Source: Macrostomum lignano (taxonomy: Eukaryota). From it: a stretch of DNA of 64,000 bases. Location: positions 124,001 to 188,000 of the forward strand of contig NIVC01000886.1 in assembly GCA_002269645.1 (NCBI GenBank). The letters run 5' to 3'. Numbering within the stretch: position 1 is the first letter of the stretch; each line of letters starts with the position of its first letter. Below are positions 1,491-57,186 of the stretch, piece by piece. Position numbers and translations under genes: made by a program. The notes under the pieces were generated by a model, which saw only the letters and a program-made list of their open reading frames with translations, had not been told where the DNA came from and did no database searches.

Positions 1491-3667
1491 AATACTGTAT
1501 GCAGCTAGCATTTCGCTTGCTTGTTACTATTATTGCAAATGAATTTGAGAATAATTTAAAATATTTGTGCATTAATTCTTGCACTCAGCTTTTGTCTCCA
1601 AACCATGCAGAATTGAAATATTTTAAACTCCCTGAGTCTTTTCCAGCTCCCTACGCTATTTCTCCCTTCTCTCTATCCTTCCCTTCTTTTCTCTCCCTTT
1701 TTCTCCTCTCTTTCGCTTCCAACTTCCCTCTTTCTCCCTCACTCCTTTAAGAAGAAACACATGCAAATTGAAATGTCAGCACACACATGATAGAATTATT
1801 TTTACTTTTCAGTCAAAAACAACACACCAAGAATATGAGCCAACAAGATCAACTCAGTGCTTATGACGCTGCTAGCACAGGAAATATTCAGGAAAGAGAA
1901 GACAACGCCTATTTTTTACCCAAAACTGTCTTAAACATTGCTTCAAGAGATGGTCAGTTAGAAGTCGTCAAGCTTATTGTGACTAATGTCGCTGACCAAA
2001 CAAGCAGGGATCAGTGCTGCATTGAGGCGGCGGAATATGCTGCAATCACAGGTCAGTTAGCAGTCGTCAAGTTTCTCGTCGAGACAGTCGCTGACCGAAC
2101 AAACAGAGATCAGTGCTGCATCAATGCTGGTAAATCTGCTGCATTCAATGGTCACTTAGAATTGGTGAAGCTTCTAATGCAAACAATTGCTAGCAAAACA
2201 AAAAGAGATCAGTGCTGCATCAACGTTTCGGAATTATCTGCAAGAAATGATCGGTGGAAAGTCGTCAAATTTCTCGTGCAAACAGTCGCTGACCAAAGAA
2301 AAAGAGATCAGTGCTGCATTGAAACCGCAAAATCTGCTGCGGCCAAGAATCAGTTAGAAGTCGTCAAGTTTCTCGTCCACATGGTCGCTGACCAAACAGA
2401 CAGAGACCACTGTTGCATCGAAGCTGCAAAATCTGCTGCATTCAACGGTCAGTTAGAAGTCGTCAAGTTTCTCGTCGCTGAGCAAGGAAACAGATATCAC
2501 TGCTGCATAGAGACTGCGAAATATGCTGCGAGCAATGGTCAGTTAGAAGTGGTCAAGTTCCTCAGCTCGTGTCTCTCAAGTCCGAATCAAAGAGCGAATC
2601 TTCGTTTCCAATGCGCAGTCGCGGCTTGCTCTCGTCTTTTCGAAGATGTCGTTGCCTCCCTCGGCCTCGAGTCCGACTGGCTCTTCCAATCCAGCACCAT
2701 CCTCAGCTTCACTGCAGCAATGGCCATCCAAGGCAGGAACTCTGTTCTCACTGACACCCTCTCTCGAATGCAGCCAGTTCACATCACACAGCTGCTCCGT
2801 CTCTCCATCTCTCAAAGACACGTCGCTCTTGCTGTCACACTGATCAATGATGAGCGAGTCAGCAAAGAGCATGTCGATCTGCCAGACAGCACTGGAGCCA
2901 CTGCTCTCATGCTGGCAGCTGATGCAGGTCATCACGAGCTCATTGAGAAACTCATCGATCTCGGTGCGTCAGTGCGTGCTGAAGACAGTCAGGGTCGGAC
3001 TGCTCTGTCACGAGCGTGCGAAGCCGGTCACGTGCGAGCAGCCAAGGCTCTGATGGACAGAGGAGCGGATGCGAGTCATCGAGACGGTCAGGGTCTGACG
3101 TGTGCGCAGGTGGCACAGCGATTTGAGCAGCGGCAGGTGCTGCGGCTGCTGGATCTCAGTGCAGCGGGGTGAGTGAGGCGAGAATTTTGCCAGTTCAAAA
3201 CACTATTGGTAAACTTTCAACTTTAAAAAAAACTGTTATATTTCTGCTTTATGACTGACTGTTGATAGTGCAAGAAAATTTGCTCGAAATGCGCTCCGTT
3301 TTGATGTTTTCTTTTATATCTTCTGTGGAAATATTTTAACAGATTTGAAATGATTCAGACAAAAGTGGTCAGTTATACATAGGGGCAAAATAGTTGAACC
3401 CTCTCTTTTCACTTTTCTCTTTTCTTGGAACTCTTATTAAAAACTTCAAGCACTGAAGTCTTATGTCTTCGATCCAGCAAATGTATTTTTCACTTCCGCA
3501 TTGCAGAAGCCCAGAGGCCAGGCAGGCAGCCGCTCACCGCTTGAATTCGGGCCTCCATCGGTGAGTCTGACCGGTTTGGCTTTCACAGCCGCATTGCGCC
3601 TTCCAACAGGTTGGCAGCTTGGGGCAGAAATTGCAGCAAAACTCAGCAGGGTTGAGATTGGGTTGGA

Positions 3668-3815
3668 CTGAGTGCTGCAGCAGCTGCACTCTCAGCTCTC
3701 CTGCTTGAGATGCCAGTCTGAGTGCTGCAGCAGCTGCACTCTCATCCCTCCTGCTTGAGATGCCAGTCTGAGTGCTGCAGCAGCTGCACTCTCAGCCTCT
3801 CAGCTCTCCTGCTTG
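3668..3815 (+). repeat. About 50-bp intronic tandem repeat (about 3 copies), also present in copy 2 at about 22208-22370
   Basis: Unit ctgagtgctgcagcagctgcactctcagctctcctgcttgagatgccagt is repeated in the same intron of both paralogues. Confidence 0.75.
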
Positions 3816-4707
3816 TTCTGTCCATCCAACTCCGAAAAGTCACCCACACACATCTCGGATCATTTCAGACTCTCAGACGACTCCCAGCAAGACAGGCGCC
3901 TGAGCGAGGAGCTGTATCGACTGCTCAGCGATGCGGGATTTACCTACCGGAGAGCAAACTGTCAGCAGAGACTGGCTGACTGGCTGCAACATGTCGCTCG
4001 AGTCCTCACACAGGATGGCAGGCAGATGACGGGCAGCTACGCAGAGGGCTGGGCCAACAGTCTGGTGCAAGTGAACGGCAGGACAGCTGCAGACTCGGAC
4101 ATTGACTGGACTGTGCTGGTTGCTGGGCAGCAGTTCCATCTGGAACGTGGCTGCAACAGAGATCGGCAGCAATGCAAAGACGCCACTCGGCTGTAGGTCA
4201 CGGAGGGCCACGCACAGGTGGCAGTGGGAGCAGGTGAGTGAGGCTGGGTTCATCATCAGAATGCTGAGATCCGCATGCAACTGGAAGCAAGTTAACTTTG
4301 CTCAATTTTAAATTCGCAACCGAGTGGCGCCCAGCCTCCAGCAGCTTCTGTGACTGCGAATGTCGGCCTGGGTGCTGAAACAAGCGGCAGGCAAAATTGA
4401 ATTGAAAACTCTGATGCCGACTGGCTGAGCCGGGCCATTGGCTTTTGAATTCACAGCTCCGGTTGCAGCAGAGTGGGTGCAGCGGTGCTTGGGTGACCCA
4501 CGGTAGGCAGCATGGCTCTGCTGAGGTGCCACTGCTCTCACTTGGAAAATTTCAAACAAAATAAACCGAAGCCGCCCTGACTGCCTGATTGGTGCCTTGC
4601 TGCGGGGCACTGAGTCCTGATGATGCTTGAGCAGTTGTGCTGAGCTGCAACCTGATGAATTAAAATTTGGTGGTGAATAAACAGGCATTAGCGGGCGTAG
4701 GTATATT

Positions 4708-4895
4708 TGGTAATAATAATAATATTTGATTACACCTGTCCCCCATTGGGCCAGATGTGCAACCGACAGCTCAGCCGCAGCTATATTGCGCGGCGCATCT
4801 GAAGGCTGCGTACGGCTGTTCAGTCCAAGGACTGAGTCGTTTCCACACACACCCTCAATTACCCCAGCTAATGCTGCACCCATTTTACAACTTAA
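4708..4895 (-). mobile_element. 5'-truncated SINE-like element with (TTA)n tail, in intron 3 of copy 1
   Basis: Reverse complement of about 14020-14198 (aatgggtg...cagcattagctggggtaattgagggtgtgtgtgg...caggtgtaatcaa then (tta)n). Absent from the equivalent intron of copy 2. Confidence 0.7.
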
Positions 4896-7800
4896 ATTTA
4901 GCAAGTGTGTAAGCGCGTAAGAAATTTCGACCAGGAGGGCCAAGTCAGACTTGCATCCTATTTTCCATTCTCCTACTTACATCTCCTCAACTTTTCAACC
5001 CAAACAATTTGCACGTTTGGATGCGAGCGCACATTTTCCATTCTCTCTCATTCAGCTAGCTCGTTTATCACTGATGACAAAATTTTAGCTTTAACTCGTA
5101 GCTAGAAAGAAATGAGTTAGGTAAAAAAATTGACCCTTATGTTTTTAAAACACCTTTTATTGGACAGAAAAATACTCGAAATCCCCATCCAGCAAAGAAA
5201 AAATCGGAAGTTTCAAACCAACCCATCTCTTTTACTGGCCAAAATGCGAATATCCGCTCACCGCGCTCCGCAGGCAGCCAACCTGCAGTGGCGGCCACGG
5301 CGTGTGGTGTGCGGCCTGCACAGGACACGTGTCATGCGATCCAGTGCTGCAGCAGTTTCTGTGAGAACAGAATTAGAAAACTGAGTGAAAGCTTGGATAA
5401 AGTTCACCTCGTTCGGGCAACCAGACCGAGCTCGACAAACGAGCTCAGAGTGAGTTTCAGCTTCCATGAGAAAGACACCATGAGACAGCTGAGCACAGTC
5501 CAGGGCCAGCTGTTCACACTCATCAAGTTCATCTTCAAGAGACACTTGCCGCTCACGCTGGACACACCTGGACTCAAGACCTACCATGCAAAGACTCTGC
5601 TCTTCGTAATGTTGGAGAAGCTCGAAGACTCGGAAAGCTCAAGCGACTCGGAAAATTTAAAAGATTCTACACAAGTTGAAGATTGGCAGCCCCAAAATCT
5701 GATCGCTCTGCTCAATGAGTCTCTAGACATGATGCTGAGCTTCATCGACTCGAGCAGCTCTCCCGATGAGTGCATGCCGCACTTCTTCATGCCCGACGCT
5801 CCGCTCTACTTCAAGAACGCTGGAATCGGCGGCGACTTCGACAAAACGAAGGCGAGGGTTCGAGACCGACTTTGTGAGCTGAGAAGCGACATCGGCGGAG
5901 TGGTCGAGCAGCTGAGGAGACTCGTGAGACCTCTGCAGTCAGAGAAGTTCTACTTTCACCTTTTCACTCTGCTTCCTCTGACAGCGCCGCCTGCTGTCAC
6001 GGAGATCAGGGAAAGAAGTGGCTATCCAGAAATGTACTACAAGTTCGCAGACGTGTACAGTGTGGTGCACCAGTGTGTGAGCGAGCTGCAGTCGGAATCG
6101 AGCGACAGAGACACCCTGATGAGGCAGCTCAGTCTCCTGCATGAGCTGCAGTGGTGCAAGTGCGCCGCCCTGTGCATGACCGCCATGGCGCATTTGAAGT
6201 TCGGAGAATATGAGGAGGCTGAGAGACTCGCGAGGGAGCTGCAGAGACATCAGGTTGAGTCAGGGTTGGAGCCAGATTATATTCAAAGAGACATTGATTT
6301 TGGCCCCACTAAATTGCCAGAGGACTCAGACTGGGCGTGGAGGTTTTGCCTCCCCTGCGACTCTCCGCCTCGCTTCCCATTCCTTCCCGAGTTCACGCAG
6401 ACTCTGTTCACAGCCAGACTGTCGCAGCCTCTCTCCTCCCACCTGTACGTGAACTTCCGCTGCCTGAGCTTGAGTCTCCAAGCTGAGCTGCTCCGCAATC
6501 GCGCACCTGCAATCAAACTGGAGGATTGGAAGCGAGAGCTGGAAGAAGACCCGGACTTGGAGGAGCTGCTCACTCTGGCTCACTACAGCGACTGCCGCGA
6601 GCATGTGGAGCTCAGCCTGCAGCAGATGGAGATGATCGAGAAAGAGAGACGCGTCGCCATGGAGACGCAGGACGAGGAGAAGATCGGCTGGGTCAGGCAG
6701 AAGCGGTGGCGAGTTTCGAACCGCAGCGGCAGCGACAGCGGCGCTCACCGCAGCAGGGAAGATGAGGAGCGGAGGCTGTGGGCGAAGGCGAGGCTGCGGC
6801 GAGACGGGGCCGACTTGGGGCGCCTGGTTGCCATGGAAACTGCAGCGGAGCAGAGAGACAGCTGGACTCACGCCAAGCTCAGTCGGATGACACTGCAGTG
6901 ACCTGGACTGGACTGGAATTTCAGACCCATAACTGTGTACTAGCTCGTAGTTCCGTTGAGTTTCTCTATTTTTTTCTCTTCAATTCAATTGAGTCTAAGT
7001 GAGATTCAATTGAGCTTTGTAACTTGTATTTTAAATAATTTTTGTTTAAGGTCTTAGATTATTGTCTGTACATGCTATCACCCCTTGTTTCCCTTTCCCT
7101 TGTTTTTTTTAGTTGCTTTTTAGGAACTGAGCACATCGAGAGCCATCGAGTGCGAGCAGCCCTCCTGCTATGAAGTGCAGTTTTGCACATTTGTGCTGCA
7201 ATTCAATTCACACTGCATGCTGAATTGCTTTTTCCATTCAAACTGTGTGTCTGCTTTGATGCGGGCTTTTCTCTGCGATTTTGTTCTGTGGACTTCAATA
7301 TCCAATTGCCAATGCTTTTTATTAAAATATTCAAGCCAAATGCACAGGTAGCAGTTATCTGCATAAACCTGGAAAATTGAAAAGTCGGCTGGGTCAGGGA
7401 GAAGCTGGAGAGACTTGATGCAGCAGCTTGAGTTGAATTCGGAATTTTGTAAGCATTTGTGGATTTCAAGAATTTTTGTTTTAAAACAAAACAGTTTCTG
7501 GTAAACATTTTACATGTATTTTTATGTCCTAAAATATTGTGTGTACATGCTCCTTAAATATGTCAGCACAATTAACATGTGAATGTTTTCATCATGTACT
7601 TCCATCACATACTTTCATCACATACTTTCATCATGTACTCTGCAGCGACTGCCAGCCTGATATTCAGTGACTCTCAGCTATTTGATCGATTGCTGTCATG
7701 TGCCAGTGATCATAATAAAAACAAGCGTAAATTATAAAATGCGTTCAACCCTACTGTCAGTAGTTGTACTCGTGGGTTCCTTAATTTATAATATTTAGCA

Positions 7801-18960: not shown

Positions 18961-19003
18961 AAAACTGTCCAACGGGCCCGTGTGGCGTCTTTCAAATTGG
19001 TCA

Positions 19004-20333
19004 CTGTGATCTGTCACTCTGGGTTGGGACCTGAGCACTGTGATCTGTCACTCTAGGCTGGGACCTGAGCACTGATCTGTCACTCTGGGTTGGGACCTGA
19101 GCACTGTGATCTGTCACTCTAGGCTGGGACCTGAGCACTGAGATCTGTCACTCTGGGCTGGGACCTGAGCACTGTGATCTGTCACTCTGGGCTGGGACCT
19201 GAGCACTGTGATCTGTCACTCTGGCCTGGGACCTGAGCACTGTGATCTGTCATTCTGGACTGGGACCTGAGCACTGTGATCAGTCACTCTGGGCTGGGAC
19301 CTGAGCACTGTGATCTGTCACTCTGGGCTGGGACCTGAGCACTGTGATCTGTCACTCTGGGCTGGGACCTGAGCACTGTGATCTGTCATTCTGGACTGGG
19401 ACCTGAGCACTGTGATCAGTCACTCTGGGCTGGGACCTGAGCACTGTGATCTGTCACTCTGGGCTGGGACCTGAGCACTGTGATCTGTCTCTCTGGGCTG
19501 GGACCTGAGCACTGTGATCTGTCACTCTGGGCTGGGACCTGAGCACTGTGATCTGTCACTCTGGGCTGGGACCTGAGCACTGTGATCTGTCACTCTGGGC
19601 TGGGACCTGAGCACTGTGATCTGTCACTCTGGGCTGGGACCTGAGCACTGTGATCTGTCACTCTAGGCTGGGACCTGAGCACTGAGATCTGTCACTCTGG
19701 GCTGGGACCTGAGCACTGTGATCTGTCACTCTGGGCTGGGACCTGAGCACTGTGATCTGTCACTCTGGGCTGGGACCTGAGCACTGTGATCTGTCACTCT
19801 GGGGTGGGACCTGAGCACTGTGATCTGTCACTCTGGGCTGGGACCTGAGCACTGTGATCTGTCACTCTGGGCTGCGACCTGAGCACTGTGATCTGTCATT
19901 CTGGGCTGGGACCTGAGCACTGTGATCTGTCACTCTGGGCTGGGACCTGAGCACTGTGATCTGTCACTCTGGGCTGGGACCTGAGCACTGTGATCTGTCA
20001 CTCTGGGCTGGGACCTGAGCACTGTGATCAGTCACTCTGGGCTGGGACCTGAGCACTGTGATCTGTCACTCTGGGCTGGGACCTGAGCACTGTGATCTGT
20101 CACTCTGGGCTGGGACCTGAGCACTGTGATCTGTCACTCTGGGGTGGGACCTGAGCACTGTGATCTGTCACTCTGGGCTGGGACCTGAGCACTGTGATCT
20201 GTCATTCTGGGCTGGGACCTGAGCACTGTGATCTGTCACTCTGGGCTGGGACCTGAGCACTGTGATCTGTCATTCTGGGCTGGGACCTGAGCACTGTGAT
20301 CTGTCACTCTGGGCTGGGACCTGAGCACTGTCA
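19004..20333. repeat. 34-bp minisatellite (ctgtgatctgtcactctgggctgggacctgagca), about 39 copies
   Basis: atctgtcactct at 19143 and 19177, continuing at 34-bp spacing. Confidence 0.97.
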
Positions 20334-20615
20334 TTCTGAGCTGCTTGCCAACCAACTGGCTGAAGCAGCGGCAAAGTGGGAGAGAAAAACTCACCAAGGC
20401 GGTTTAACAAGGCACTTTCCTGTGCACCCGAGCCGCCTCATCCAACTGATGCGATTTCAAGCCATTCGTTGTTTTGCTTTGAACAGATCAAAACAAACTG
20501 CAACTCTGACAGCAGCAGTTTTTTATATATTCGTTTTCTCCTTCCCTCTCCTTCACCCATCAACAGGAAAGTATTTTTCTTCTAGTGAAAAGCACTCACC
20601 GGTGAACCAAGCAGA

Positions 20616-23600
20616 ATGAGCCAACAAATCAGTGCTGACGAGGCAGCCAAAACAGGAAATATTCAGGCGCTCAGCCACTATCTGGATTTTCAACAAACAG
20701 AAAAAGACATATATAACTTCTGCAAAGGCTGTTCACAAATTGCCGCATTCAAAGGACAGTGGGAAGTCTTCAAGTTTCTCGTGCAGAGAATCGCTGACCA
20801 TACATATGCAAACAGAGATCACTGCTGGATCGAGGATGCCGAATTTGCAGCACTCAATCGTCTTTGGGACGTCGTTAAGTTTCTTGTGCCGACAGTCGCT
20901 GACCAAACAAAAAGAGATCACTTCTGCATCGAGGCTGCGAAATATGCCGCAAGCAAGGGTCACTTGGAAGTCGTAAAGTATCTCGTGCCTATGTTAGATG
21001 ACCAAAAAAAAAGAGATCACCTCCGCATCGAGGCTGCGAAATATGCTGCAAGCAATGGTCACTTAGAAGTCGTCAAGTTTCTCGTGCCTACACTAGCTGG
21101 CAAAACACAAAGAGATCAGTGCTGCATCGAGGCTGCCAAGTATGCTGCAACTAATGGTCACTTAGAAGCCATCAAATATCTCGTGGCGACAGTCTCTGAC
21201 AAAACACAAAGAGATCAGTGCTGCATCGAGGCTGCTAAATTTGCTACAGAATTGAATCAACGAGAAGTGATGAAGTGCCTTCTTTCTTGTTTTTCAACCC
21301 TGGATCTCGGTTTGCAATGGGCGGTCGAGGCTTGCTCTCGTCTTCATAAAGATGTTGATGCCTCCCTCGGTCTCGAGCCCGACTGGCTCTTCCAATCCAG
21401 CACCATCCTCACCTTCACTGCAGCAATGGCCATCGAAGGCAGGAACTCTGTTCTCAACGACACCCTCTCTCGAATGCAGCCAGTTCACATCACACAGCTG
21501 CTCCGTCACTCCATTTCTCAAAGACACGTCGCTCTTGCTGTCACACTGATCAATGATGAGCGAGTCAGCACAGAGCATGTCGATCTGCCAGACAGCACTG
21601 GAGCCACTGCTCTCATGCTGGCAGCTGATGCAGGTCATCACGAGCTCATTGAGAAACTCATCGATCTCGGTGCGTCAGTGCGTGCTGAAGATAGTCAGGG
21701 TCGGACTGCTCTGTCACGAGCGTGCGAAGCCGGTCACGTGCGGGTAGTCAAGGTTCTGATCGACAGAGGAGCGGATGCGAGTCATCGAGACGGTCGGGGC
21801 CTGACGTGTGCGCAGGTGGCAGAGCGATTTGAGCAGCAGCAGGTGCTGCGGTTGCTGGATGCCAGTGGAGCGGGGTGAGTAAGGCGAGAATCTTTTCATT
21901 ACAAACAAAGACAAAGACAAAGACAAAGACAAAGAATAATCTTTGCGTCTCATGGAACGGCGAAATATAAGAGACCCCTTGTGAACAGATGTTTTATTTA
22001 AATGCAATACTTGAGTAGAAGCAAAAACACTGCTGTGAGAACCCTGGCTTTCCTTCCCGCATTGCAGAAGCCCAGAGGCCCGACAGGCAGCCGTTCACCG
22101 CTTGGATTCGGGCCTCCATCGGTGAGTCTGACCGATTAGGCTTTCACTGCCGCATTGCGCCTTCCAACAGGTTGGCAGCTTGGGGAAAAATTGCAGTGAA
22201 ACTCGGCAGGGCTGAGATTGGGTTGGACTGAGTGCAGCAGCAGCTGCACTCTCAGCTCTCCTGCTTGAGATGCCAGTCTGTGTGCTGCAGCAGCTGCACT
22301 CTCAGCTCTCCTGCTTGAGATGCCAGTCTGAGTGCTGCAGCAGCTGCACTCTCAGCTCTCCTGCTTGTTCTGTCCATCCAACTCAGAGCAACTCCCGCAC
22401 ACACATCTCGGATCATTCCAGGCTCTCAGACGACTCCCAGAAAGAAAGGCGCCTGAGCAAGGAGCTGCATCGACTGCTCAGCGATGCGGGATTCACCTGG
22501 CAGAGAGCAAAGTGTCAGCAGAGACTGGCTGACTGGCTGGAAGAAGTCGCTCGAGTCCTCACACAGGATGGCAGGCAGATAACGGGCAGCTACGCAGAGG
22601 GCTGGGCCAACAGTCTGGTGCAAGTGAACGGCAGGACAGCTGCAGACTCGGACATTGACTGGACTGTGCTGGTTGCTGGGCAGCAGTTCCATCTGGAAGG
22701 TGGCTGCAACGGAGATCGGCAGCAATGCAGAGACGCCACTCGGCTGCAGGTCACAGAGGGCCACGCACAGGTGGCAGTAGGAGCAGGTGAGTGAGGCTGG
22801 GTTCATCATCAGAATGCTGAGATCCGTATGCAACTGGAAGCCCAATAACTGCTCAATTATACGTATAATCAATTGTATATTTTTAAGTAGCACCCAGCCT
22901 CCAGCAGCTTTAAATTGAATTGAAAACTCTGATGCCAACTGGCTAAGCTGGGTCATTGGGTTTTGAATTCACAGGCTCCGATTGCAGCAGAGTGGGTGCA
23001 GCGGTGCTTGGGTGACCCACGGTAGGCGGCATGGCTCTGCTGAGGTGCCGCTGCTCTCACTTGGAAAATTTCAAACAAAATAAACCGAAGCCGCCCTGAC
23101 TGCCTGATTGGTGCCTTGCTGCGGGACACTGAGTCCTGATGATGCTTGAGCAGCTGTGCTGAGATGCAACCTGATGAAGCCAGAGCACCTGAAGCTGAAG
23201 CTGGGCGGACTCAGTGGGTGCAGAGGCTCATGCCTCACAGGTGCACTTGTTTGGCTCTGCAGAGAGCGCGAAATTCTGTGGCGTCTCACCGAGCAGCTTG
23301 GGTTGCAAACTGGGCCAGACGGAGAGCATTACAACCCTCGCCACACAGCGAGAGGCGCCCCCACTCCCACTGGAGTCTCTAACGCCCTTTGCAGGCTAGA
23401 CCACGCCGCCCACAATGTACACATTTTTATTGATAAATAAGAATAGCTCGTGTGTATTGGTTAGTAGATGAAAATGGAGTTACAAAAGCAACCTTTTTAC
23501 TTGAGGGGGAAATTTCATTGGACAGTCAAATACCCGAAATTCTCTACCAGCCAAGAGAAAATCTGCAGTTTCAAACCAACTCATCTTTTTCACTCGCCAC

Positions 23601-25274
23601 AAAGCGACTCTCCGCTCACTGCACTCTGCAGGCAGCCAACCTGCAGTGACAGCCACGGCGTGCGGTGTGCGGCCTGCACAGGACACGTGCCATGCGATCC
23701 AGTGCTGCAGCAGTTTCTGTGGGGACATAATTGCAAAACTGCTTTCATCCAGCACGATTTGTCCATTGAATTCTAAGAAAGTTCACCTCGTGCAGGCGAC
23801 CAGACCGAGCTCGATCAACGAGCTCAGAGTGAGCTTCAGCTTCCAAGAGAAAGACATCATGAGAGACCTGAGCACAGTCCAGGGACAGCTGTTCACACTC
23901 ATCAAGTTCATCTTCAAGAGACACTTGCCGCTCACTCTGGACACACCTGGACTCAAGACCTACCATGCGAAGACTCTGCTCTTCACAATGCTGGAGAAGC
24001 ATGGCACAGATCCTTTAAGTGAGGCTTGGCAGCCCCACAATCTGATCGCTCTGCTCAAGGAGTCTCTCGACATGATGCTGAGCTTCATCGACTCAAGCAG
24101 CTCGCCCGATGAGTGCATGCCGCACTTCTTCATGCCCGACGCTCCGCTCTACTTCAAGAACGCTGGAATCGGCGGCGACTTCGACAACACGAAGGCGAGG
24201 GTTCGAGACCGACTTTGTGAGCTGAGAAGCGACATCGGCGGAGTGGTCGAGCAGCTGAGGAGACTCGTGAGACCTCTGCAGTCAGAGAAGTTCTACTTTC
24301 ACCTTTTCACTCTGCTGCCTCTGACAGCGCCGCCTGCTGTCACGGTGATCAGGGAAAGAAGTGGCTATCCAGAAATGTACTACAAGTTCTCAGACGTGTA
24401 CAGTGTGGTGCACCAGTGTGTGAGCGAGCTGCAGTCGGAATCGAGCGACAGAGACACACTGATGAGGCAGCTCAGTCTCCTGCATGAGCTGCAGTGGTGC
24501 AAGTGCGCCGCCCTGTGCATGACCGCCATGGCGCATTTGAAGTTCGGAGAATATGAGGAGGCTGAGAGACTCGCGATGGAGCTGCAGAGACATCAGGTTG
24601 AGTCAGGGTTGAAGTTAATCGATATTCCGACAGTATATATTCGAGTCAATTACAGGCAAAAATCAAAAGTAAAACTGCCAGAAGACTCAGACTGGGCGTG
24701 GAGGTTTTGCCTCCCCTGCGACTCTCCGCCTCGCTTCCCATTCCTTCCTGAGTTCACGCAGACTCTGTTCACAGCCAGACTGTCGCAGCCTCTCTCCTCC
24801 CACCTGTACGTGAACTTCCGCTGCCTGAGCTGGAGTCTCCAAGCTGAGCTGCTCCGCAATCGCGCACCTGCAATTAAACTGGAGGATTGGAAGCGAGAGC
24901 TGGAAGAAGACCCGGACTTGGAGGAGCTGCTCACTCTGGCTCACTACAGCGACTGCCGCGAGCACGTGGAGCTCAGCCTGCAGCAGATGGAGATGATCGA
25001 GAAAGAGGGACGCGTCGCCATGGAGACGCAGGACGAGGAGAAGATCGGCGGGGTCAGAGAGAAGCTGGAGGGACTGCAGAAGCTGACTGAGGTGGGTTCG
25101 AGTCCGAGACCGAGCCTCGAGGCAACAGCTGGAGTCCCCAAAGTCGAGTCGCAAATTTCAGGTCGGAAAAAAATTGTTTTTCTTGTATTTTGTTTTTTTG
25201 CTTTTGTTTGTACATTTTTAGGAAACGAGCACATCCAGAGCTGGCGAGACCTTATGAATCGCTTCTGCTTTTGA
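20616..25274 (+). CDS. Ankyrin-repeat / cGAS-like receptor (Mab-21 family nucleotidyltransferase) fusion protein, copy 2, intact, about 1106 aa
   Basis: ATG at 20616 after acceptor ttcttctag. Exons 20616-21874, 22068-22121, 22422-22786, 23632-25274 (GT-AG; phases 2,2,1; 3321 nt; no stops). NTase signature GSYAEG...DSDID plus third Asp in QDTCHAI. Mab-21 C-lobe LKTYHAKTLLF and CMPHFFMPD; TPR-like AMAHLKFGEYEEAERLA. Confidence 0.85.
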
Positions 25275-25703: not shown

Positions 25704-26345
25704 TCGCTTACATCATGTACTTTCATCATGTACTCGTGTAATTTGCAGCGACTAACAGACTGACCACATTCAGTGACTCCCCGTTATTTGATCCATTGGT
25801 GTCATGTCCCAGTAATCATATTGAAAAAACAATCGCAAATAATAAAATGCCATTATCCCTACTGTCAGTAGTTGTACTTGTAGGCTCCTTCATTACAAAT
25901 ACGCTCTTATTTAGCATGTTTGTTTGCTTGTGACCATTTGCAAATATATTTTAACTCACGATTTTTCTTTTAATGCTGTCTTAAACGTGACGCAAACTAA
26001 AAAATTTTCTGATGTTTTAAGCAGCTTTTTTTAATAAACAACATTTCATAATTCTGGCCTTCATGAAATTCTTTCCTTTCTCCTCTTCTTTCTCTCTATT
26101 CTCTACCCCCTCTACGCTCTCCTCTCTGACTCTCCCCTCCTTTCTCTCCTCCATCCCCCTTCCAACTCCTCTTTTCATTATCTCCCCTCTTCTATTCCCT
26201 CTCCTCTCTTTTTTCATCCCTCATCTTCTATTCCTCTCCTTTTCACTCATATGGCCCAATCAAACAGATAACTGTAGTAATGGGTGCAAATGGATATAAT
26301 ATTACGTTGTTACGAGAGTCTCGTAACTTTAATAAATAAGTTTTG

Positions 26346-28838
26346 CTCCCTCATGAACATTCAGTGACTGACAGCCTGACAGCTCCATCATGAACATACA
26401 GTGACTGACAGCCTGACAGCTCCCTCATGAACATTCAGTGACTGACAGCCTGACAGCTCCCTCCTGAACATTCAGTGACTGACAGCCTGACAGCTCCCTC
26501 ATGAACATTCAGTGACTGACAGCCTGACAGCTCCATCATGAACATACAGTGACTGACAGCCTGACAGCTCCCTCATGAACATTCAGTGACTGACAGCCTG
26601 ACAGCTCCCTCCTGAACATTCAGTGACTGACAGCCTGACAGCTCCCTCATGAACATTCAGTGACTGACAGCCTGACAGCTCCCTCCTGAACATTCAGTGA
26701 CTGACAGCCTGACAGCTCCCTCATGAACATTCAGTGACTGACAGCCTGACAGCTCCCTCATGAACATTCAGTGACTGACAGCCTGACAGCTCCCTCATGA
26801 ACATTCAGTGACTGACAGCCTGACAGCTCCATCATGAACATTCAGTGACTGACAGCCTAACAGCTCCCTCATGAACATTCAGTGACTGACAGCCTGACAG
26901 CTCCATCATGAACATTCAGTGACTGACAGCCTGACAGCTCCCTCATGAACATTCAGTGACTGACAGCCTGACAGCTCCCTCATGAACATTCAGTGACTGA
27001 CAGCCTGACAGCTCCCTCATGAACATTCAGTGACTGACAGCCTGACAGCTCCCTCATGAACATTCAGTGACTGACAGCCTGACAGCTCCCTCATGAACAT
27101 TCAGTGACTGACAGCCTGACAGCTCCCTCATGAACATTCAGTGACTGACAGCCTGACAGCTCCCTCATGAACATTCAGTGACTGACAGCCTGACAGCTCC
27201 CTCATGAACATTCAGTGACTGACAGCCTGACAGCTCCCTCATGAACATTCAGTGACTGACAGCCTGACAGCTCCCTCATGAACATTCAGTGACTGACAGC
27301 CTGACAGCTCCCTCATGAACATTCACTGACTGACAGCCTGACAGCTCCCTCATGAACATTCAGTGACTGACAGCCTGACAGCTCCCTCATGAACATTCAG
27401 TGACTGACAGCCTGACAGCTCCCTCATGAACATTCAGTGACTGACAGCCTGACAGCTCCCTCATGAACATTCACTGACTGACAGCCTGACAGCTCCCTCA
27501 TGAACATTCACTGACTGACAGCCTGACAGCTCCCTCATGAACATTCACTGACTGACAGCCTGACAGCTCCCTCATGAACATTCACTGACTGACAGCCTGA
27601 CAGCTCCCTCATGAACATTCAGTGACTGACAGCCTGACAGCTCCCTCATGAACATTCAGTGACTGACAGCCTGACAGCTCCCTCATGAACATTCAGTGAC
27701 TGACAGCCTGACAGCTCCCTCATGAACATTCAGTGACTGACAGCCTGACAGCTCCCTCATGAACATTCAGTGACTGACAGCCTGACAGCTCCCTCATGAA
27801 CATTCAGTGACTGACAGCCTGACAGCTCCCTCATGAACATTCAGTGACTGACAGCCTGACAGCTCCCTCATGAACATTCAGTGACTGACAGCCTGACAGC
27901 TCCCTCATGAACATTCAGTGACTGACAGCCTGACAGCTCCATCATGAACATTCAGTGACTGACAGCCTGACAGCTCCCTCATGAACATTCAGTGACTGAC
28001 AGCCTGACAGCTCCATCATGAACATTCAGTGACTGACAGCCTGACAGCTCCCTCATGAACATTCAGTGACTGACAGCCTGACAGCTCCCTCATGAACATT
28101 CAGTGACTGACAGCCTGACAGCTCCCTCATGAACATTCAGTGACTGACAGCCTGACAGCTCCCTCATGAACATTCAGTGACTGACAGCCTGACAGCTCCC
28201 TCATGAACATTCAGTGACTGACAGCCTGACAGCTCCCTCATGAACATTCAGTGACTGACAGCCTGACAGCTCCCTCATGAACATTCAGTGACTGACAGCC
28301 TGACAGCTCCCTCATGAACATTCAGTGACTGACAGCCTGACAGCTCCCTCATGAACATTCAGTGACTGACAGCCTGACAGCTCCCTCATGAACATTCAGT
28401 GACTGACAGCCTGACAGCTCCCTCATGAACATTCAGTGACTGACAGCCTGACAACTCCCTCATGAACATTCACTGACTGACAGCCTGACAGCTCCCTCAT
28501 GAGCATTCAGTGACTGACAGCCTGACAGCTCCCTCATGAACATTCAGTGACTGACAGCCTGACAGCTCCCTCATGAACATTCAGTGACTGACAGCCTGAC
28601 AGCTCCCTCATGAACATTCAGTGACTGACAGCCTGACAGCTCCCTCATGAACATTCAGTGACTGACAGCCTGACAGCTCCCTCATGAACATTCAGTGACT
28701 GACAGCCTGACAGCTCCATCATGAACATTCAGTGACTGACAGCCTGACAGCTCCCTCATGAACATTCAGTGACTGACAGCCTGACAGCTCCCTCATGAAC
28801 ATTCAGTGACTGACAGCCTGACAGCTCCCTCATGAACA
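26346..28838. repeat. 37-bp minisatellite (ctccctcatgaacattcagtgactgacagcctgacag), about 67 highly homogeneous copies
   Basis: Unit starts at 26346 and 26383, continuing throughout. Confidence 0.98.
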
Positions 28839-28839
28839 T

Positions 28840-31640: not shown

Positions 31641-34600
31641 ATGGCTCGACGTGGCACCAGCGCATTGAAGAAGAGCAGAGATGCCAAGAAGAAGCGTCAG
31701 CAAGAGAGTGCCGTTCAGCGAGAGGAGCGGCTGGCTGGACTGCGGCAGCAGAAGAATGAGCGAACGGCCATGGAGACTGACGCGCAGCGAGAAGAGCGGC
31801 TGGCTGGACACCGGCAGCAGGAGGCTGAGCGAAGGGCAACGGAAACCGACGCTCAGCGAGAAGAGCGCCTGACGAGACTCCGGCAGGAAAATGCTGAGCG
31901 AAGGGCAATGGAAACCGACGCTCAGCGAGAAGAGCGCCTGACGAGACTCCGGCAGGAAAATGCTGAGCGAAGGGCAACTGAAACCGACGCTCAGCGAGAA
32001 GAGCGCCTGACGAGACTCCGGCAGGAAAATGCTGAGCGAAGGGCAACGGAAACCGACGCTCAGCGAGAAGAGCGCCTGACGAGACTCCGGCAGGAAAATG
32101 CTGAGCGAAGGGCAACGGAAACAGACGCTCAGCGAGAAGAGCGTAGATCTGGAGACAGAACTCGTGCGGAGAAGCGACGCGCTTCAGAAACCGAAGAGCA
32201 ACGAAGAGCTCGAGTGGAAGCCGAGCAAATTCGCCGTCGAGGAGTGTCGGCTGGCAGGTAGGATGACATTTTAATTGGAGCTATATATTTTATAGCTATA
32301 TAAAATCCAAGTGCCCATTGTGCCTAATTCTGGGTATTTTCTATCTTAGCTGATGTTTTATTGGTACTTGGGCATATAATTAAAAACTGGAATCTGTTTC
32401 GTGCATTTTTCCTAATCTTTTCAGGTCGATTGCTTTCCAAGAATTTTTATTTAAGAGATCAGTATAGAATAGCATAAAATTTATTCGTCACTACTTTAAT
32501 AACCGACAAATGAAGTTGTGTATAATTTTTTCCTATATTCCAGGTTTGATAGTAGTGAGTTGGCCACACCGTCTGTGGTACCTTTTGATGCGTTGCGCAT
32601 AATTCGCATTCCTGGTGATGGGAACTGTTTTTTTTATGCAGTCTGTGATCAGTTGCAGGGCACTCCACTTGAGACCGATGCGGCATCTTTAAGACACGAG
32701 CTGACGAGCCGTGTAGTGCAGATTATGCCAGAATTGATTGAACAAGGCTTTGTTTTGCCAGAAAATGCTGATTTCATTGTTGATTCATCTTTTTCTGAAG
32801 GCACATATGTGCCTGATGAAGTTGTTCCGCTTTTAAGCCGTTGTTTTAATGTTGATCTGGTGATTTATCAAGAAAATGGCACTGTATTGCAGTACTGTAT
32901 GTCCCCTTTGCAGCCACCGATTGCAATCGTCCGAATTCTTTTGCGTCATGAGCATTATGAGTCATTGCGATTTGCTAATCCGATTCCAGTTTCTGAGCCC
33001 ATTGTAGATGCAGAGGAGCCAAGATTAACTCAACAGGGTGCAGGTCATTTTGGCGCAAGACCTGCTCAAGAGAGGTAGGTCATTGGTGTGACTGGTCATC
33101 ATAATTTATTTGTCATCGAACTCAAGTTGTTTTATTCTAATATTTTTTTGTAAACTGAAAGATTAACTGGGAAAACTGTTTGCCATTAATCCTTTCTAAT
33201 CCTAATCCTTCTAATCACAGGCCAGAACGGATAATCAGGCCTGAAGCGCCAGCCCATAACTGTGGCCCAATGGACAGAGCATGCGACCAATGCGGTGCAT
33301 TACTTTGGTGCTCTGAGACGAGGAATTTCTGCTGCGCCAAAGGCAAGGTAAAGCTGCCCAGCCGCACCGTGCCTCAAGTGCTGGCGGATCTGTACCTGGG
33401 GCGGCACAGACTGAGTGCCAAGTTCCTGACCAACATTCGGAGTTACAACTCGGCGCTGCACCTGACATCGCTGGGTGCCAAACTGCGGTTGGTGCCAGGC
33501 TGGTGTCCCAGCTTCATCATCAGCGGCCAGTTGCATCACAACACGGCGCCGCTGTTTGCAGAAGATTCAGCTGAGCCCCATGGCTGGCAAGTGTATTTCA
33601 ATGATCGCGAACTTGAAAGCCGCCAGAGTCTCAGCCAGAAGGTGAAGCCGGAACTACTGGAGCTGTTGCAGACGCTGCTTCACGAATGCAACGGCTATGT
33701 CCGCAGCCTGAGGGCAGTCGCTCATCGAATCAGTCAAGATCCGGAGTTGGGAGATGCGCGAATCGTGATTCACCCTGACCGTCGACCATCTGGGGAACAC
33801 ATTCGGTATGTCTGCAAGACATTCTAATAAGATATTTTGCGTAATAAATTATCCAATTATCCAATTATCCAATTTGTACAAACTCAGTATCCCACAAACT
33901 CCGTTCAAAATAAGGCGCTACAACTTGCCTACGGCGAACGAGGTCGGTATCCTGATTGTGGAGGACAATGAGAACACACCGGCCAGTCGGGACGTGGTGA
34001 TTCAACTGCGTGGAGGCGGTTCCCAGAGAATCAGCGAGACGCACCGCTCATACGACCCGCTGGAGTATGTGCTGCTGTTCCCGAATGGCGAAGATGGCTG
34101 GCACCCGGAGTTGCTGATGAGTAATGGCAAGAAATTGACGCCCATGAAATACTATGCGAGCGAAATCATGGTGCGAGCGGGCCAGTTCAGTGTGCTGCAC
34201 TATGGCCGAAGATTATTTCAGCAGTACTTGGTGGACATGTGTGCCAAGATTGAGGCAGAGAGGCTGCTGTATTTGCGGACCCATCAGCAGGACCTGCGCA
34301 GCGAGACGTACAGCGGTCTGCGGGACGCTCTGTTTGCAGCTGATGGCAGGTCTACCGACAGAGATCCGAGTGACATAGGCAAGCCCGCGCATGTGCTTCT
34401 GTCTTCGAGCTTCGTTGGCGGGCCAAGGTACCTGATGGAGAGGCTACAGGACGCTATGACCTATGTTCACAAGTTCGGTAAGCCGGACCTGTTTGTCACC
34501 GCAACGTGCAATCCGAAATGGCCGGAGATCAGCGCTCAGCTTCTGCCTGGACAGCGGGCAGAAGACCGGCCCGACATTGTTAGCCGAGTCTTTGAAATGA

Positions 34601-37600
34601 AGAAGAAAGCTCTGCTGGCCCAGTTGACCAAGCGCTATGGGAAAGAGGCCGCTCACGTTTGCTCACTGGAGTACCAGAAGCGTGGTGAGTAAAAATTCTG
34701 ACTTGCAAGAATCAAAGTTTTAAGATTTATTAAAATTTAGATTTACAAAGGTTTTGTGATATTTTTTAATACTTTTTTTGACGCTCCAGGTCTTCCTCAT
34801 GTGCACTTTCTGCTGTGGCTCGTGAGCGGTCAGCGAGTGACTCCGGACCGATACGATGACATCGTGTCTGCCGAGATTCCGGACCCAGAGCAGCAGCCTG
34901 TGCTGTATGAGCTGGTGAAGACGCACATGATCCATGGCCCCTGCGGCAAGGAGAATCCGGCGTGTCCTTGCATGGAGAATGGCGAATGCAGCAAGGGCTT
35001 TCCGAAAGAGTTCCAGCAGGTGACGCTGACCAGCGATACTGGCTACCCACTGTACCGCAGACTATCGCCTGAGATGGGCGGATTTACAGTGGACAAACTG
35101 TTCAAAGGCCGGAGCATTCGCATGGACAACAGGGAAGTTCAAACGCTAATATATTGCTTAGTTGTGCATTGCTGCTTTTGTTTCTGAAAGTTAATGATAT
35201 TATTTTTTCATTAAAACAGGTGGGTCGTTCCGTACAGCCCTGAACTGTTGCTCCACTTTGCGTGCCACTTGAACGTCGAAGTTTGCGCCACTGTGAAGTC
35301 GGTCAAGTACGTGATCAAGTACCTGTTAAAGGGTGGCGACATGGCGACGTTCAAAGTCGATGCCAATAGGAATTCTACTGAACCGAGAGAGCAGGCAGTG
35401 GGTAACCAGCAGCCGACGCAAACGACACGAAATGAGCCGCGGCGTGATGAGATTAAGGAGTACCTGTCCGCGCGCTACATTGGTCCAATGGAAGCCGTGA
35501 ATACCATCTTGGGCTTTGAAGTAATTCGCATTCTAATTATTATTGGCTCATTTTAACCAGAGCTGTGAAACCTCATCATAGTATAAATTGAATTTCCATC
35601 GAAACTTAAAGGCTGTATATTTTCCTTTCACTTTCTGATCAGGTGCACAACAGGTTTCCGGCGGTCATCCGACTCTGCGTTCACAAGTCGGAAGAGCAGC
35701 TCGTGTATTTCAACGAGGGGACCGCAAGAGCAAAAGCGAGAACGCCGAAGGATTCGACGTTGACGGCATTTTTCAAGCTGTGCCGTATTGACGAATTTGC
35801 TGGGTCCTTGCTCTACACGGACGTGCCGTCCTACTTCGTGTGGCACTCCAGTGAAAGAGAGTGGCGGCGGGCCAAGCAGGGTGTGCGAGTCGATGGCCAT
35901 CCGGGTGTAGTGCGGAACAAAAACGTTGCACGCATGTATACGGTGAGTCCAAGAGCAGGTGATTTATTTTACGTTCGAATGCTCCTTTTGAATGTTAGGG
36001 GACCGACTAGCTTCGAGGCGCTGCAGACCGTGGACGGCGTTGTGCATCCGAGCGCCAAGGCTGCTTGCATGGCCCTTGGCCTGCTGCAGCGAGATGATCA
36101 CTGGCGGCGGTGTCTAGCTGAGGCCGTTCAGTCAAGAATGCCAAGAGCCCTGAGACATCTTCTGGCCGTAATTCTCATATGGGGTGAGCCTGAGGATGGC
36201 AGCGACCTCTGGTGCAGTTTTGCCGAGGATCTCAGCGAGGACCTGCGGTTCCACCACCGAGACTTGAGCACCGAGGAGATTACTGACCTGGCGCTGCGTG
36301 AGCTTCAGAGCATGCTGATCTCCATGGGCGGGAGAAGCCTGCCAGAGTACGGCCTGCCTGCGGCCTCCGTGACACCTCAAGATGGACCAATGCAGTTTGA
36401 TACGGTTGAGCAAGCACTGATTACTGAGGCGCGCTTACCAATGCTGACAGATGAGCAGAAAGCGGTGTACGAGTCCGTGACTCAGAATCTTGTGGACGGC
36501 ACCAGCGGCTTGCACTTCCTGGACGCACCTGCTGGCACTGGCAAGACCTTCCTGCTGGAGGTTCTGCTAGCCTTCGTGCGCAGCCGGGGTGAAGTCGCTC
36601 TCGCCGTTGCGGCTTCTGGAATCGCAGCGACTCTTTTGCCAGGTGGACAGACGGCGCATTCAACGTGAGTAATTTATTGTCAATATTTCAAAAAGCAGTT
36701 GTAAATATTTCGTGTGCTGTAAATATGTTCGGCATGGTGAAACTATTTGTCTATGCCAGGTTCAAGATACCAATTCGGGCGATCCGTTCGAGCAAAGACG
36801 TGTGCGCTGTTGGAGCGCAGTCCAAACAGGCCGCTTTATTTCGGACAGTGCGTCTAATTGTCTGGGACGAGATTTCTATGACAAACCGGAAGGATTTGGA
36901 GGCCGTCGACCGGTGCTTGCGAGACGTGCGGAAGCAGGACGTGCCATTCGGCGGAGTGGTTTTCGTTTGCGCTGGGGACTTTCGCCAGCTGCTGCCCGTT
37001 GTGGTGCATGGGACTCGAGCCAACAGCGTCATGGCGTGTGTCAGCAGATCCCCACTGTGGAAATTTTTCCGGCGGCATCGCCTTACAAGAAACATCCGAT
37101 TGCTGAGCAGTTCCGATTCTGCAACGTATTTGAGATACACCGAGCTACTCAAGCAGGTAAGTTTGTTTTCATCAGTTTATTTATTGGAAGATTTAAGGAT
37201 GTTCGGTTTCTTTCGTGTTGAGAGCTCCATTTTAAAAAGTGTGGCTTATTCAAGAATGCCTTGCTTAAAGTCTGTCTAGCGTTTTAAATATTTGACTTTT
37301 AACTCCCCCAGATCGGATCCGGAACAATTGAGCAGGATGCAGAGGAGAAAGTGTCTCTTCCTGCTGAGATCATTATTTCTGCGGAGGCGCCGCTCAATGA
37401 TCTGATAAATTTTGTGTACCCATCGTTTGAGGCCTCAGTGGAGAGGGACGGCTACTTTGCAAGCCGAGCGATCCTGGCGCCGTACAATGACTCAGTGGAT
37501 GCCATCAACGAGACGTGCCTGGGCATGTTCCCCGGCAGCCTGCGGGAGTACCGCTCAATAGACAGTGTGGCCGATGAGGATGCCGCTACGCACTTCCCGC

Positions 37601-52909: not shown

Positions 52910-57186
<4,277 letters not shown>

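Follow-up and report, generated by a model that had tools for sequence, protein, structure and literature searches.

An unannotated four-exon gene of Macrostomum lignano joins an ankyrin-repeat array to a cGLR domain

Organization of the locus

The window analysed here is a 64,000-nucleotide stretch of Macrostomum lignano contig NIVC01000886.1 (assembly GCA_002269645.1, positions 124,001 to 188,000 of the forward strand). It carries two related genes, referred to below as copy A and copy B, and their surroundings contain minisatellites and a Helitron. The features under discussion are given in window positions; a slash marks an exon boundary.

1835..6901, + strand: copy A, a paralogue in tandem with copy B and on its strand; exons 1835-3168, 3507-3560, 3869-4233 and 5274-6901
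20573..20585, + strand: acceptor-like polypyrimidine tract and AG, 30 nt 5' of the copy B ATG, as read from the sequence
20616..21874, + strand: exon 1 of copy B, with the start codon and the region of ankyrin repeats (aa 1-420); it ends in phase 2 (GCGGG/gtgagt)
21875..22067, + strand: intron 1 of copy B, 193 nt (gtgagt...tgcag)
22068..22121, + strand: exon 2 of copy B, a 54-nt micro-exon (cag/A...CG/gtgagt), entered and left in phase 2
22122..22421, + strand: intron 2 of copy B, 300 nt
22422..22786, + strand: exon 3 of copy B, 365 nt (ccag/G...GCAG/gtgagt), ending in phase 1; N-terminal half of the NTase core
22787..23631, + strand: intron 3 of copy B, 845 nt, phase 1
23632..25274, + strand: exon 4 of copy B (acceptor tgcag/G); third Asp, Mab-21_C lobe, tail and stop codon (25272-25274)

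Once joined, exons 20616-21874, 22068-22121, 22422-22786 and 23632-25274 form a single open frame of 1106 codons. The resulting CDS spans 3321 nt, its first in-frame stop is the one at 25272-25274, and its splice sites follow the consensus GTGAGT...AG. A sequence-only reading of this DNA had proposed that one spliced gene encodes a single chain of about 1100 aa, with ankyrin repeats and a cGAS-like NTase, and the joined frame supports that proposal. The ankyrin ORF at 20616-21878 has 420 codons and terminates in GCG GGG TGA, with the TGA lying inside the GTGAGT donor; the claimed overlap of stop and donor is thus confirmed, exon 1 ending at 21874 in phase 2. It is equally correct that the 54-nt exon and the NTase exon continue in phase (2/2, with the joined frame open) and that a phase-1 intron supplies the third catalytic Asp (QDTCHAI), since exon 3 ends in phase 1 and exon 4 opens with RPAQ-D577-TCHAI.

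Several smaller features accompany this layout. The N-terminus encoded by exon 1 (MSQQI..) resembles that of the M. lignano gene model P0002 (MSQQIT..). Exon 2 encodes (G)SPEARQAAVHRLDSGLH(R), and its skipping would preserve the frame because 54 nt is a multiple of three. In-frame Met codons are absent from exons 2 and 3, and the processed mRNA would therefore not allow translation of the NTase alone. Intron 1 harbours an (ACAAAG)5 microsatellite and is not alignable between the two copies, while intron 2 carries a 50-nt tandem repeat of 2.8 copies (22228-22367). Within exon 4, the segment 25162-25221 may be a further in-frame intron of 60 nt (AG/gtcgga...ttttag/G); when retained, it encodes a hydrophobic stretch of 19 aa. 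The acceptor-like tract upstream of the copy B ATG has a counterpart in copy A, ttttacttttcag, located 22 nt 5' of the copy A ATG. The tract at 20573-20585 might represent a candidate spliced-leader or 5'-UTR acceptor; trans-splicing affects 38.8% of M. lignano genes (PMC5730564).

Splice junctions in related gene models

The M. lignano gene models were built from RNA-seq with StringTie/TACO (PMC5730564), and both the junction-spanning peptides and the intron phases of copy B are also present in them. The layout of P0001 (BOX15_Mlig000394g2), whose locus was mapped exon by exon, is identical to that of copy B in the positions and phases of its exons and introns (2/2/1), including the 54-nt exon and the gtgagt donors. 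The exon 2 peptide occurs at the same place in P0001, P0023 and P0040, and the other relatives have linkers of 9-64 aa at this point. A more distant model, P0024, is only 46% identical to copy B and has a phase-2 and a phase-1 intron at the same codons, these introns being 565 and 77 nt long and unrelated in sequence to those of copy B. The codon split by intron 3 in copy B is split in P0001 as well as in P0024 (by the 77-nt intron in the latter). It is also important to note that the closest database protein is 84-85% identical to copy B, and that the DNA identity of copy B to the fetched M. lignano loci is only 84-96%.

Comparison of the two copies

Copy A shares the four exons of copy B and contains a 99-nt ANK repeat in 6.3 copies. 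Identity between the copies amounts to 94.0% in intron 2, 92.6% in exon 2, 94.5% in exon 3 and 95.1% in exon 4. The earlier statement that all junctions are conserved in both paralogues is therefore accurate as a description but uninformative as an argument, intron 2 being as well conserved as its flanks. The 54-nt exon is indeed open in both copies, and the AGG versus CGA change in an Arg codon is real, being found among four differences in this exon (two synonymous and two non-synonymous). However, recent duplication or gene conversion suffices to account for shared junctions and an open micro-exon, so they are not in themselves a sign of selection, and we rejected paralogue conservation as evidence for the micro-exon.

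The use of both paralogues as evidence had also overlooked an in-frame TAG at 4194-4196, which interrupts the NTase exon of copy A between the DxD and the third Asp, where copy B has CAG. Because of this codon, copy A as assembled is a pseudogene. The copies differ at the C-terminal end as well: a T-rich segment is read through in copy B, and a different, Arg/Ser-rich end is common to copy A and the M. lignano protein PAA68676.1 (BOX15_Mlig016402g1, model P0004). The dN/dS ratio of copy B versus copy A ranges from 0.3 to 1.6; exon 3 has the value of 1.6, and most of the gene lies at 0.5-0.7. Such values indicate weak constraint, though copy A is itself broken.

These observations raise the question of whether copy B might be an unexpressed or decaying duplicate, that is, an incipient pseudogene in a repeat-rich region. 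The premature TAG in adjoining copy A, the inter-copy dN/dS, the minisatellites and the Helitron around the locus, and the absence of database proteins more than 85% identical to copy B are all in line with such a fate. Nevertheless, we consider it unlikely. The 3321-nt frame is open over all four exons with intact splice sites and catalytic residues, closely related M. lignano loci are transcribed, and copy A alone, or else the rapid evolution typical of expanded immune families, can explain the raised dN/dS.

Domains of the copy B protein

The N-terminal region consists of tandem 33-residue ankyrin repeats, as seen both in Pfam matches (Ank_2, E=1e-29; Ank, E=8e-24) and in the periodicity of exon 1, where a 99-nt (33-aa) tandem repeat runs for 4.4 copies (20809-21245). 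Canonical ANK repeats follow at approximately aa 320-410.

For the C-terminal part, residues 421-1050 were modelled with AlphaFold (AF2) on an alignment of 40 relatives, giving a pLDDT of 89.4 and a pTM of 0.90. The best 50 Foldseek matches of this model in the PDB were all cGAS or MAB21L1 (E down to 5e-7, target TM 0.5-0.57), aligning over 350-400 columns on targets of 340-360 residues at a sequence identity of 14-16%. By predicted structure, the domain is thus homologous to cGLR/CD-NTase enzymes, and the assignment to the cGAS/Mab-21 fold, for which a structure search pointing elsewhere would have been fatal, stands. An initial model, built on nine close relatives, reached a pLDDT of only 57 (below 50 in the NTase core) and was superseded by the 40-sequence alignment; its Foldseek matches were already cGAS and MAB21L1, with E of about 0.04 over some 150 columns. 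A sequence-profile search of the PDB returned only cGAS, cGLR1 and MAB21L1 (E 0.003-0.05) when run with a trimmed alignment, used instead of the untrimmed one, whose results were swamped by ankyrin proteins.

In Pfam, the matches expected by the sequence-only reading were only partly obtained: Ank_2 and Ank were clear, and Mab-21_C was found at threshold (24.1-26.1 bits against a cutoff of 24.1; aa 662-732, 23937-24149), but the NTase-core model PF03281 gave no match in the copy B protein. A cGLR is expected to show sequence homology over the NTase core as well as the C-terminal helix bundle; here, in both the Mab-21_C and the PDB profile matches, it was detected in the helical lobe only.

The active site is complete. 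Exon 3 encodes I-T-G493-S494 (22579-22590), D515 (22651-22653) and D517 (22657-22659), and exon 4 supplies the third catalytic Asp, D577 (23682-23684), which gives the motif I491-T-G-S494, X20, D515-I-D517-W, X58, Q-D577-T. Residues G73, S74, S94, D95 and D97 (numbering of the 630-aa query) show at least 90% conservation among the 40 relatives, and the same holds for the whole G/S/D/D/D set, including the third Asp, down to 23% identity. In the AF2 model, strand 68-72 is followed by the GS, and the DxD opens strand 95-109 (630-aa query numbering). Motif, conservation and model together support the claim of a full GS/DxD/D set in an NTase of the cGAS/Mab-21 fold.

Among the criteria of Li et al. 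(2023) for cGLRs are the active-site motif h[QT]GS X8-20 [DE]h[DE]h X50-90 h[DE]h and a looser form of it, G[S/G] ... [E/D]h[E/D] X50-90 [E/D] (PMC9980059). Copy B matches the looser form throughout and departs from the strict one only at the flanks of the third Asp (Q-D-T), which are non-hydrophobic; the 20 residues between its GS and DxD are the most that the motif allows. The strict expression was rejected as a family test on account of the Q-D-T flanks and also of many distant relatives that have VGS rather than [QT]GS; conservation over the 40 aligned relatives was used in its place.

Copy B has the two-lobed fold of human and mouse cGAS and of Drosophila cGLR1, in which the NTase core is paired with the helical lobe (Mab-21_C), and, like cGAS and animal cGLRs, it carries the [DE]h[DE]...[DE] triad as well as the GS loop. 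What sets it apart from cGAS and cGLR1 are two additions, the ankyrin array at the N-terminus (about 420 aa) and a domain at the C-terminus (about 250 aa). Unlike the basic cGAS and animal cGLRs, with which its identity is only 14-16%, it has a near-neutral or acidic pI (7.3 for the cGLR core, 5.8 for core plus tail), and nucleic-acid-sensing cGLRs in the study of Li et al. have pI above 8.5 (PMC9980059). The developmental Mab-21 proteins MAB21L1 and MAB21L2 also share the fold and are among the best structural matches. However, Mab21L1/2/3 are marked in the tree of Li et al. as having no predicted functional active site (PMC9980059), whereas copy B has a complete GS loop and triad, both of them conserved.

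The tail (approximately 24366-25103, about 250 aa) is family-specific, and its AF2 model contains only helices and a small sheet. It had been described as TPR-like, which was not borne out: a Pfam search with E values up to 5 found neither TPR nor any other family in residues 801-1050 of copy B or in eight relatives.

A Macrostomum-expanded family

A profile search recovered at least 89 clusters (50% identity) at E<1e-30; in Macrostomum, the ANK-cGLR architecture has undergone a very large expansion. M. lignano accounted for 38 of the 39 word-search matches, for 19 of the 20 clusters sampled in a search of representatives, and for every named family member sampled. Most of the members sampled have ANK and Mab-21_C together, and one product combines the two in each of dozens of M. 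lignano models, with identity down to 23-30%.

This architecture and gene family were already catalogued in 2023, and copy B is a further copy. Fusions of cGLRs to ANK or TPR modules are described by Li et al., whose Tables S2 and S3 include M. lignano proteins classed as cGLRs that bear Ank_2 domains (PMC9980059). Among the listed proteins, PAA68676.1 (P0004) as well as P0001 have the same order as copy B, ANK-linker-cGLR-tail, with 83-85% identity over cGLR and tail and the same catalytic residues. P0004 has a linker that differs in sequence from that of copy B and is shorter by six residues. Copy B is nevertheless a distinct paralogue, and its N-terminal 33-aa array differs in number and sequence. 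The ANK-, TPR- and death-domain-fused cGLRs of Stylophora pistillata (Li et al. 2023) follow the same concept of a cGLR core with a protein-interaction repeat module; they come from a coral, that is, from another phylum, and are likened to copy B by concept rather than by sequence or domain order. Our literature search found no papers dedicated to flatworm cGLRs, and no M. lignano row was found in the per-species table of cGLR and STING counts of Li et al. (PMC9980059). Overall, copy B is an unannotated paralogue in an ANK-cGLR family that is known but uncharacterised and is expanded in Macrostomum.

Five M. lignano catalytic-domain constructs, including PAA68676.1 (83% identical to copy B), were cloned and purified for a screen of 140 enzymes; they bear no active label or note in the screen table and are not among the 15 characterised actives (PMC9980059). 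Together with the report that Platyhelminths lack most of the cGLR pathway (Li et al. 2023, PMC9980059), this could point to a cGAS/Mab-21 fold that does not serve cyclic-dinucleotide signalling, whether as a MAB21L1-like scaffold, as a nucleotide-binding regulator or as an enzyme with another product, e.g., linear oligonucleotides. MAB21L1 matches the structure as well as cGAS does, the GS-DxD spacing lies at the limit of the motif, and the third-Asp flanks are atypical. We find this explanation distinctly improbable: the conservation of the triad and GS loop down to 23% identity is hard to explain without catalysis, the screened constructs had no ANK region, and Li et al. ascribe in vitro inactivity to missing ligands (PMC9980059).

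Hardly credible, finally, is the absence of any fusion, with the ankyrin ORF stopping at the TGA (21876-21878) and the Mab-21 part being a separate gene of the same transcription unit, expressed, e.g., by spliced-leader trans-splicing: polycistronic precursors are common among M. lignano transcription units (PMC5730564), a spliced leader might in theory be joined to the acceptors at 22067 and 22421, and intron 2 offers an in-frame ATG (ORF 22270-22794), but that ATG sits in the 50-nt tandem repeat, exons 2-3 have no Met before the catalytic residues, intron phases are conserved, and ANK and Mab-21_C stand in one product across those dozens of models.

Proposed function and significance

In our opinion, the best explanation of copy B, and a probable one, is a four-exon ANK-cGLR gene working as a cytosolic innate-immune sensor with a second-messenger output. 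The predicted protein of about 1100 aa comprises an ankyrin array in which canonical ANK repeats come after degenerate ones of 33 aa, a short variable linker encoded by the 54-nt micro-exon, the cGLR (cGAS-like receptor) domain with its NTase core and Mab-21 helical lobe, and the tail of about 250 aa. If expressed as its relatives are, it would reside in the cytosol as an innate-immune sensor, its cGLR domain producing a nucleotide second messenger, putatively a cyclic dinucleotide, by means of D515/D517/D577 and the G493-S494 loop. Synthesis would presumably be controlled by a binding partner of the ankyrin array, the tail or both, and read out by a downstream receptor. As the catalytic domain has none of the basic character of nucleic-acid-sensing cGLRs, a protein ligand, or one of some other non-nucleic-acid kind, would be more probable than dsDNA or dsRNA.

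As far as annotation is concerned, a complete ANK-cGLR has been recovered from a gene that is invisible to an ORF-only reading, and its neighbour turns out to be a broken copy. The biological gain is modest, since ANK-fused cGLRs, those of M. lignano included, have already been published and cloned. It is tempting to go further and suppose, although we hold it to be rather unlikely, that Macrostomum ANK-cGLRs form a fast-diversifying repertoire in which variable ankyrin arrays, instead of a basic groove, recognise non-nucleic-acid ligands and switch on a second messenger, possibly acting through a non-canonical-STING receptor. If true, this would take place in a phylum from which cGLR signalling is reported to have been largely lost.

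To our knowledge, the ligand is known for none of the cGLRs that carry an added repeat domain, and Macrostomum is an animal amenable to both transgenesis and RNAi. Given these two circumstances and the large expansion of the family, full-length Macrostomum ANK-cGLRs would be a reasonable place to seek a non-nucleic-acid cGLR ligand.

Structure of the fused gene

The gene at 20616-25274 encodes a single-chain ankyrin-fused cGAS-like receptor (ANK-cGLR), whose catalytic set is complete and conserved. The features of the locus and its surroundings are:

1800-1812 (copy A) and 20573-20585 (copy B): acceptor-like polypyrimidine-AG sites, 22-30 nt upstream of the start codons
1835-6901, forward strand: copy A, tandem paralogue
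3668-3801 (copy A) and 22228-22367 (copy B): 50-nt tandem repeat in intron 2, ~2.7 units
19002-20331: 34-nt minisatellite, 39 copies, 96% matches, directly upstream of copy B
20616-25274, forward strand: copy B, the four-exon gene
25162-25221: candidate short in-frame intron, 60 nt, T-rich, bounded by AG/gt...ag/G
26345-28839, 41293-48642, 50550-52855, 54795-55779 and 58586-61877: very long minisatellite arrays, periods 14-37 nt, up to 147 copies
33808-38076, forward strand: Helitron ORFs with Helitron_like_N, PIF1 helicase, Pif1 2B and UvrD_C domains

Judging by its domains, 33808-38076 is a Helitron transposon, possibly degraded, as these domains are spread over several frames. The minisatellite arrays account for the extreme GC/AT skews, long artefactual ORFs and a 'pentapeptide repeat' Pfam match in the regions they occupy.

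The ankyrin ORF (20616-21878, 420 codons) ends in GCG GGG TGA and, as a sequence-only reading of the region had noticed, its TGA falls within a consensus GTGAGT donor. Joining 20616-21874 (ankyrin), 22068-22121 (54-nt micro-exon), 22422-22786 (N-terminal NTase core) and 23632-25274 (third catalytic Asp, Mab-21_C and tail) yields a 3321-nt frame with zero internal stops. All three introns have a gtgagt donor and a polypyrimidine-cag acceptor, and the splice coordinates and phases (2, 2 and 1) proposed in that reading are borne out by the open frame and consensus sites. Since exon 2 has a length divisible by three, inclusion of this predicted exon in copy B stays putative from sequence alone. 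The ATG of a mechanical ORF running into the NTase exon (22270-22794) falls inside the intron 2 tandem repeat.

The acceptor-like sites upstream of both start codons would fit spliced-leader trans-splicing or an upstream 5'-UTR exon. At the other end of the gene, 25162-25221 might be spliced out as a short in-frame intron; retained, it would add a hydrophobic stretch of 19 residues (KKIVFLVFCFFAFVCTFLG) close to the C-terminus. Hydrophobic C-terminal segments also occur in a few annotated relatives (the M. lignano database proteins P0018 and P0024), and for this reason a membrane anchor is conceivable.

Comparison of the two copies

Copy A lies on the same strand and has the same four exons as copy B. 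Identity between the copies is 92.6%, 94.5% and 95.1% in exons 2, 3 and 4, and 94.0% and 85.9% in introns 2 and 3, while intron 1 could not be aligned. The junctions are kept in both copies, as had been claimed, but this is weak evidence: because intron 2 is as similar as the exons, the shared junctions and open micro-exon are no better conserved than the neutral DNA beside them. The synonymous difference reported in the 54-nt exon (AGG versus CGA, Arg) is real. What had been overlooked is an in-frame TAG at 4194-4196 in the NTase exon of copy A (CAG in copy B), situated downstream of the DxD motif and ahead of the third catalytic Asp; therefore, copy A is a pseudogene as assembled.

It is possible that copy B is likewise a decaying duplicate, given its broken neighbour and the relaxed dN/dS between the copies, which reaches 1.6 in exon 3 (based on 3 synonymous and 15 non-synonymous changes) against 0.3-0.7 for most segments. 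Against this stand the intact frame, splice sites and catalytic residues of copy B.

A 99-nt (33-aa) ankyrin-like repeat is present in 4.4 units in copy B (20809-21245) versus 6.3 in copy A (1952-2563), and dS in these N-terminal repeats is 0.64 versus 0.04-0.18 elsewhere in the gene, although repeat alignment out of register may inflate the former value. Such differences in copy number and dS suggest that the repeats turn over while the 3' part is homogenised, or that the 3' part has undergone gene conversion. The pattern would be compatible with an enzymatic chassis that is kept homogeneous and carries a variable recognition module.

Fold and active site

Of the domains expected in the spliced protein, Pfam recovered ankyrin repeats (Ank_2, E=1e-29) and, at threshold level, Mab-21_C (24.1 bits in the full protein and 26.1 when trimmed; cutoff 24.1), but its NTase-core model found no match. 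The only PDB sequences matched by the family profile were cGAS, cGLR1 and MAB21L1 (E 0.003-0.05). An AlphaFold model from 9 close relatives was poor and was superseded by one built with 40 relatives, down to 23% identical (pLDDT 89.4, pTM 0.90). The best 50 PDB matches of this model are all cGAS or MAB21L1 (E down to 5e-7), extending over 350-400 columns, approximately the entire catalytic domain of the targets; the structure search that had been proposed as a refuting test thus recovered the predicted cGAS/Mab-21 fold.

Li et al. 2023 (PMC9980059) recognise cGLRs by three criteria, namely an active-site motif, homology in both lobes and structural homology as predicted by modelling. The active site of copy B reads I-T-G493-S494, X20, D515-I-D517-W, X58, D577. 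In the model, GS follows the first strand, DxD opens the second and the third Asp opens a later one, a predicted placement as expected for an NTase. The GS/DxD/D set is therefore complete, as proposed, with conservation of at least 90% for G/S, S-D-x-D and P..D...A in the 40-sequence alignment; the sole departure from the strict cGLR motif is that D577 is flanked by Q and T, not hydrophobic residues. The protein may have a non-CDN or scaffold function, as MAB21L1 does, yet conservation of the catalytic triad argues against this.

H528, C540, H552 and C585 (H108, C120, H132 and C165 of the 630-residue query, residues 421-1050) lie around the third-Asp strand, are at least 90% conserved among the 40 relatives and form a candidate structural metal site. 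The tail, described earlier as TPR-like, is not TPR by any test applied, Pfam finding nothing in the last ~250 residues of the protein. It includes the motifs DWAWRFC and FLPEF and is specific to this ANK-cGLR family.

Relatives and family

The C-terminal 630 residues matched 39 proteins, all but one from M. lignano, and most carry ankyrin repeats and Mab-21_C in a single product. These BOX15_Mlig models derive from genome-guided RNA-seq assembly (StringTie/TACO, TransDecoder) with experimentally supported gene boundaries (PMC5730564). One of them, P0001, reads ...LLDASRAG/SPEARQAAAHRLDFGLHR/LSDDSQ... and ...AGAG/SQPAVTATACGVRPAQDTCHAIQ... across the junctions, and its locus has a layout identical to copy B (54-nt exon, 365-nt exon, phases 2/2/1, gtgagt donors). 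In P0024 (46% identical), the phase-2 intron between the ankyrin and NTase parts is retained, as is the phase-1 intron, which splits the same Gly codon (AG/SQPAV); these introns (565 and 77 nt) are unrelated in sequence to those of copy B, and the micro-exon is absent from the locus. Linker length across relatives varies from 9 to 64 residues. That the ankyrin and Mab-21 parts may be two separate genes is countered by dozens of fused relatives and by the lack of a start codon in the NTase part, as methionine is absent from exons 2 and 3, so that the NTase is not a stand-alone product of processed mRNA.

A profile search covering 1.84 billion representatives returned 550 proteins at E<1e-3; at E<1e-30 there were 89 clusters, defined at 50% identity. 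Many matches span the whole cGLR and tail profile and are preceded by a ~500-residue N-terminal extension; weaker ones (E ~1e-10) cover only the Mab-21_C region. Twenty strong clusters were looked up, and 19 of them, every one with an organism name, are from M. lignano. Among nine clusters scanned, eight had ankyrin repeats and eight Mab-21_C, mostly below threshold. P0046 contains two cGLR and tail units in tandem (residues 4-588 and 749-1317) and in P0005 the second unit is partial. Such proteins are either tandem-domain fusions, a type that Li et al. also describe, or gene models in which adjacent paralogues were merged.

Prior knowledge and possible function

Whether this architecture was already catalogued had been left open; it was. 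In the account of Li et al. 2023 (PMC9980059), single-domain proteins make up 87% of cGLRs; TPR or ankyrin modules occur in some, and ankyrin fusions are figured. M. lignano accessions with Ank_2 hits appear in their domain table, among them PAA68676.1 (P0004), which is 83% identical to the window protein. Their screen table includes five M. lignano constructs (#89-93), starting past the ankyrin region and extending into the tail, with a blank Note column (PMC9980059). The 15 characterised active cGLRs come from insects, anemones, molluscs, hydras and corals, and in-vitro inactivity of many others was ascribed to unknown ligands (Li et al., PMC9980059). Our literature search found no paper devoted to flatworm cGLRs, and Macrostomum is evidently an exception to the reported platyhelminth loss of most of the cGLR pathway.

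The protein is probably a cytosolic sensor, in which synthesis of a nucleotide signal would be controlled through ligand or partner binding; the putative role of the ankyrin array could be any of three, namely sensor, autoinhibitor or docking module. The pI is 7.3 for the catalytic core and 5.8 for core plus tail, whereas dsDNA- and dsRNA-sensing cGLRs exceed 8.5, and acidic cGLRs were proposed to bind non-nucleic-acid ligands (Li et al., PMC9980059). These values would weakly favour a non-nucleic-acid ligand, as suggested earlier.

Overall, gene structure and enzyme family were correctly inferred from raw sequence. With DNA identity of only 84-96% to the M. lignano loci compared, the gene is either a new paralogue or the orthologue of a sister species, within an already catalogued, functionally uncharacterised ANK-cGLR family. 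That family is still a reasonable place to look for a cGLR ligand other than nucleic acid.
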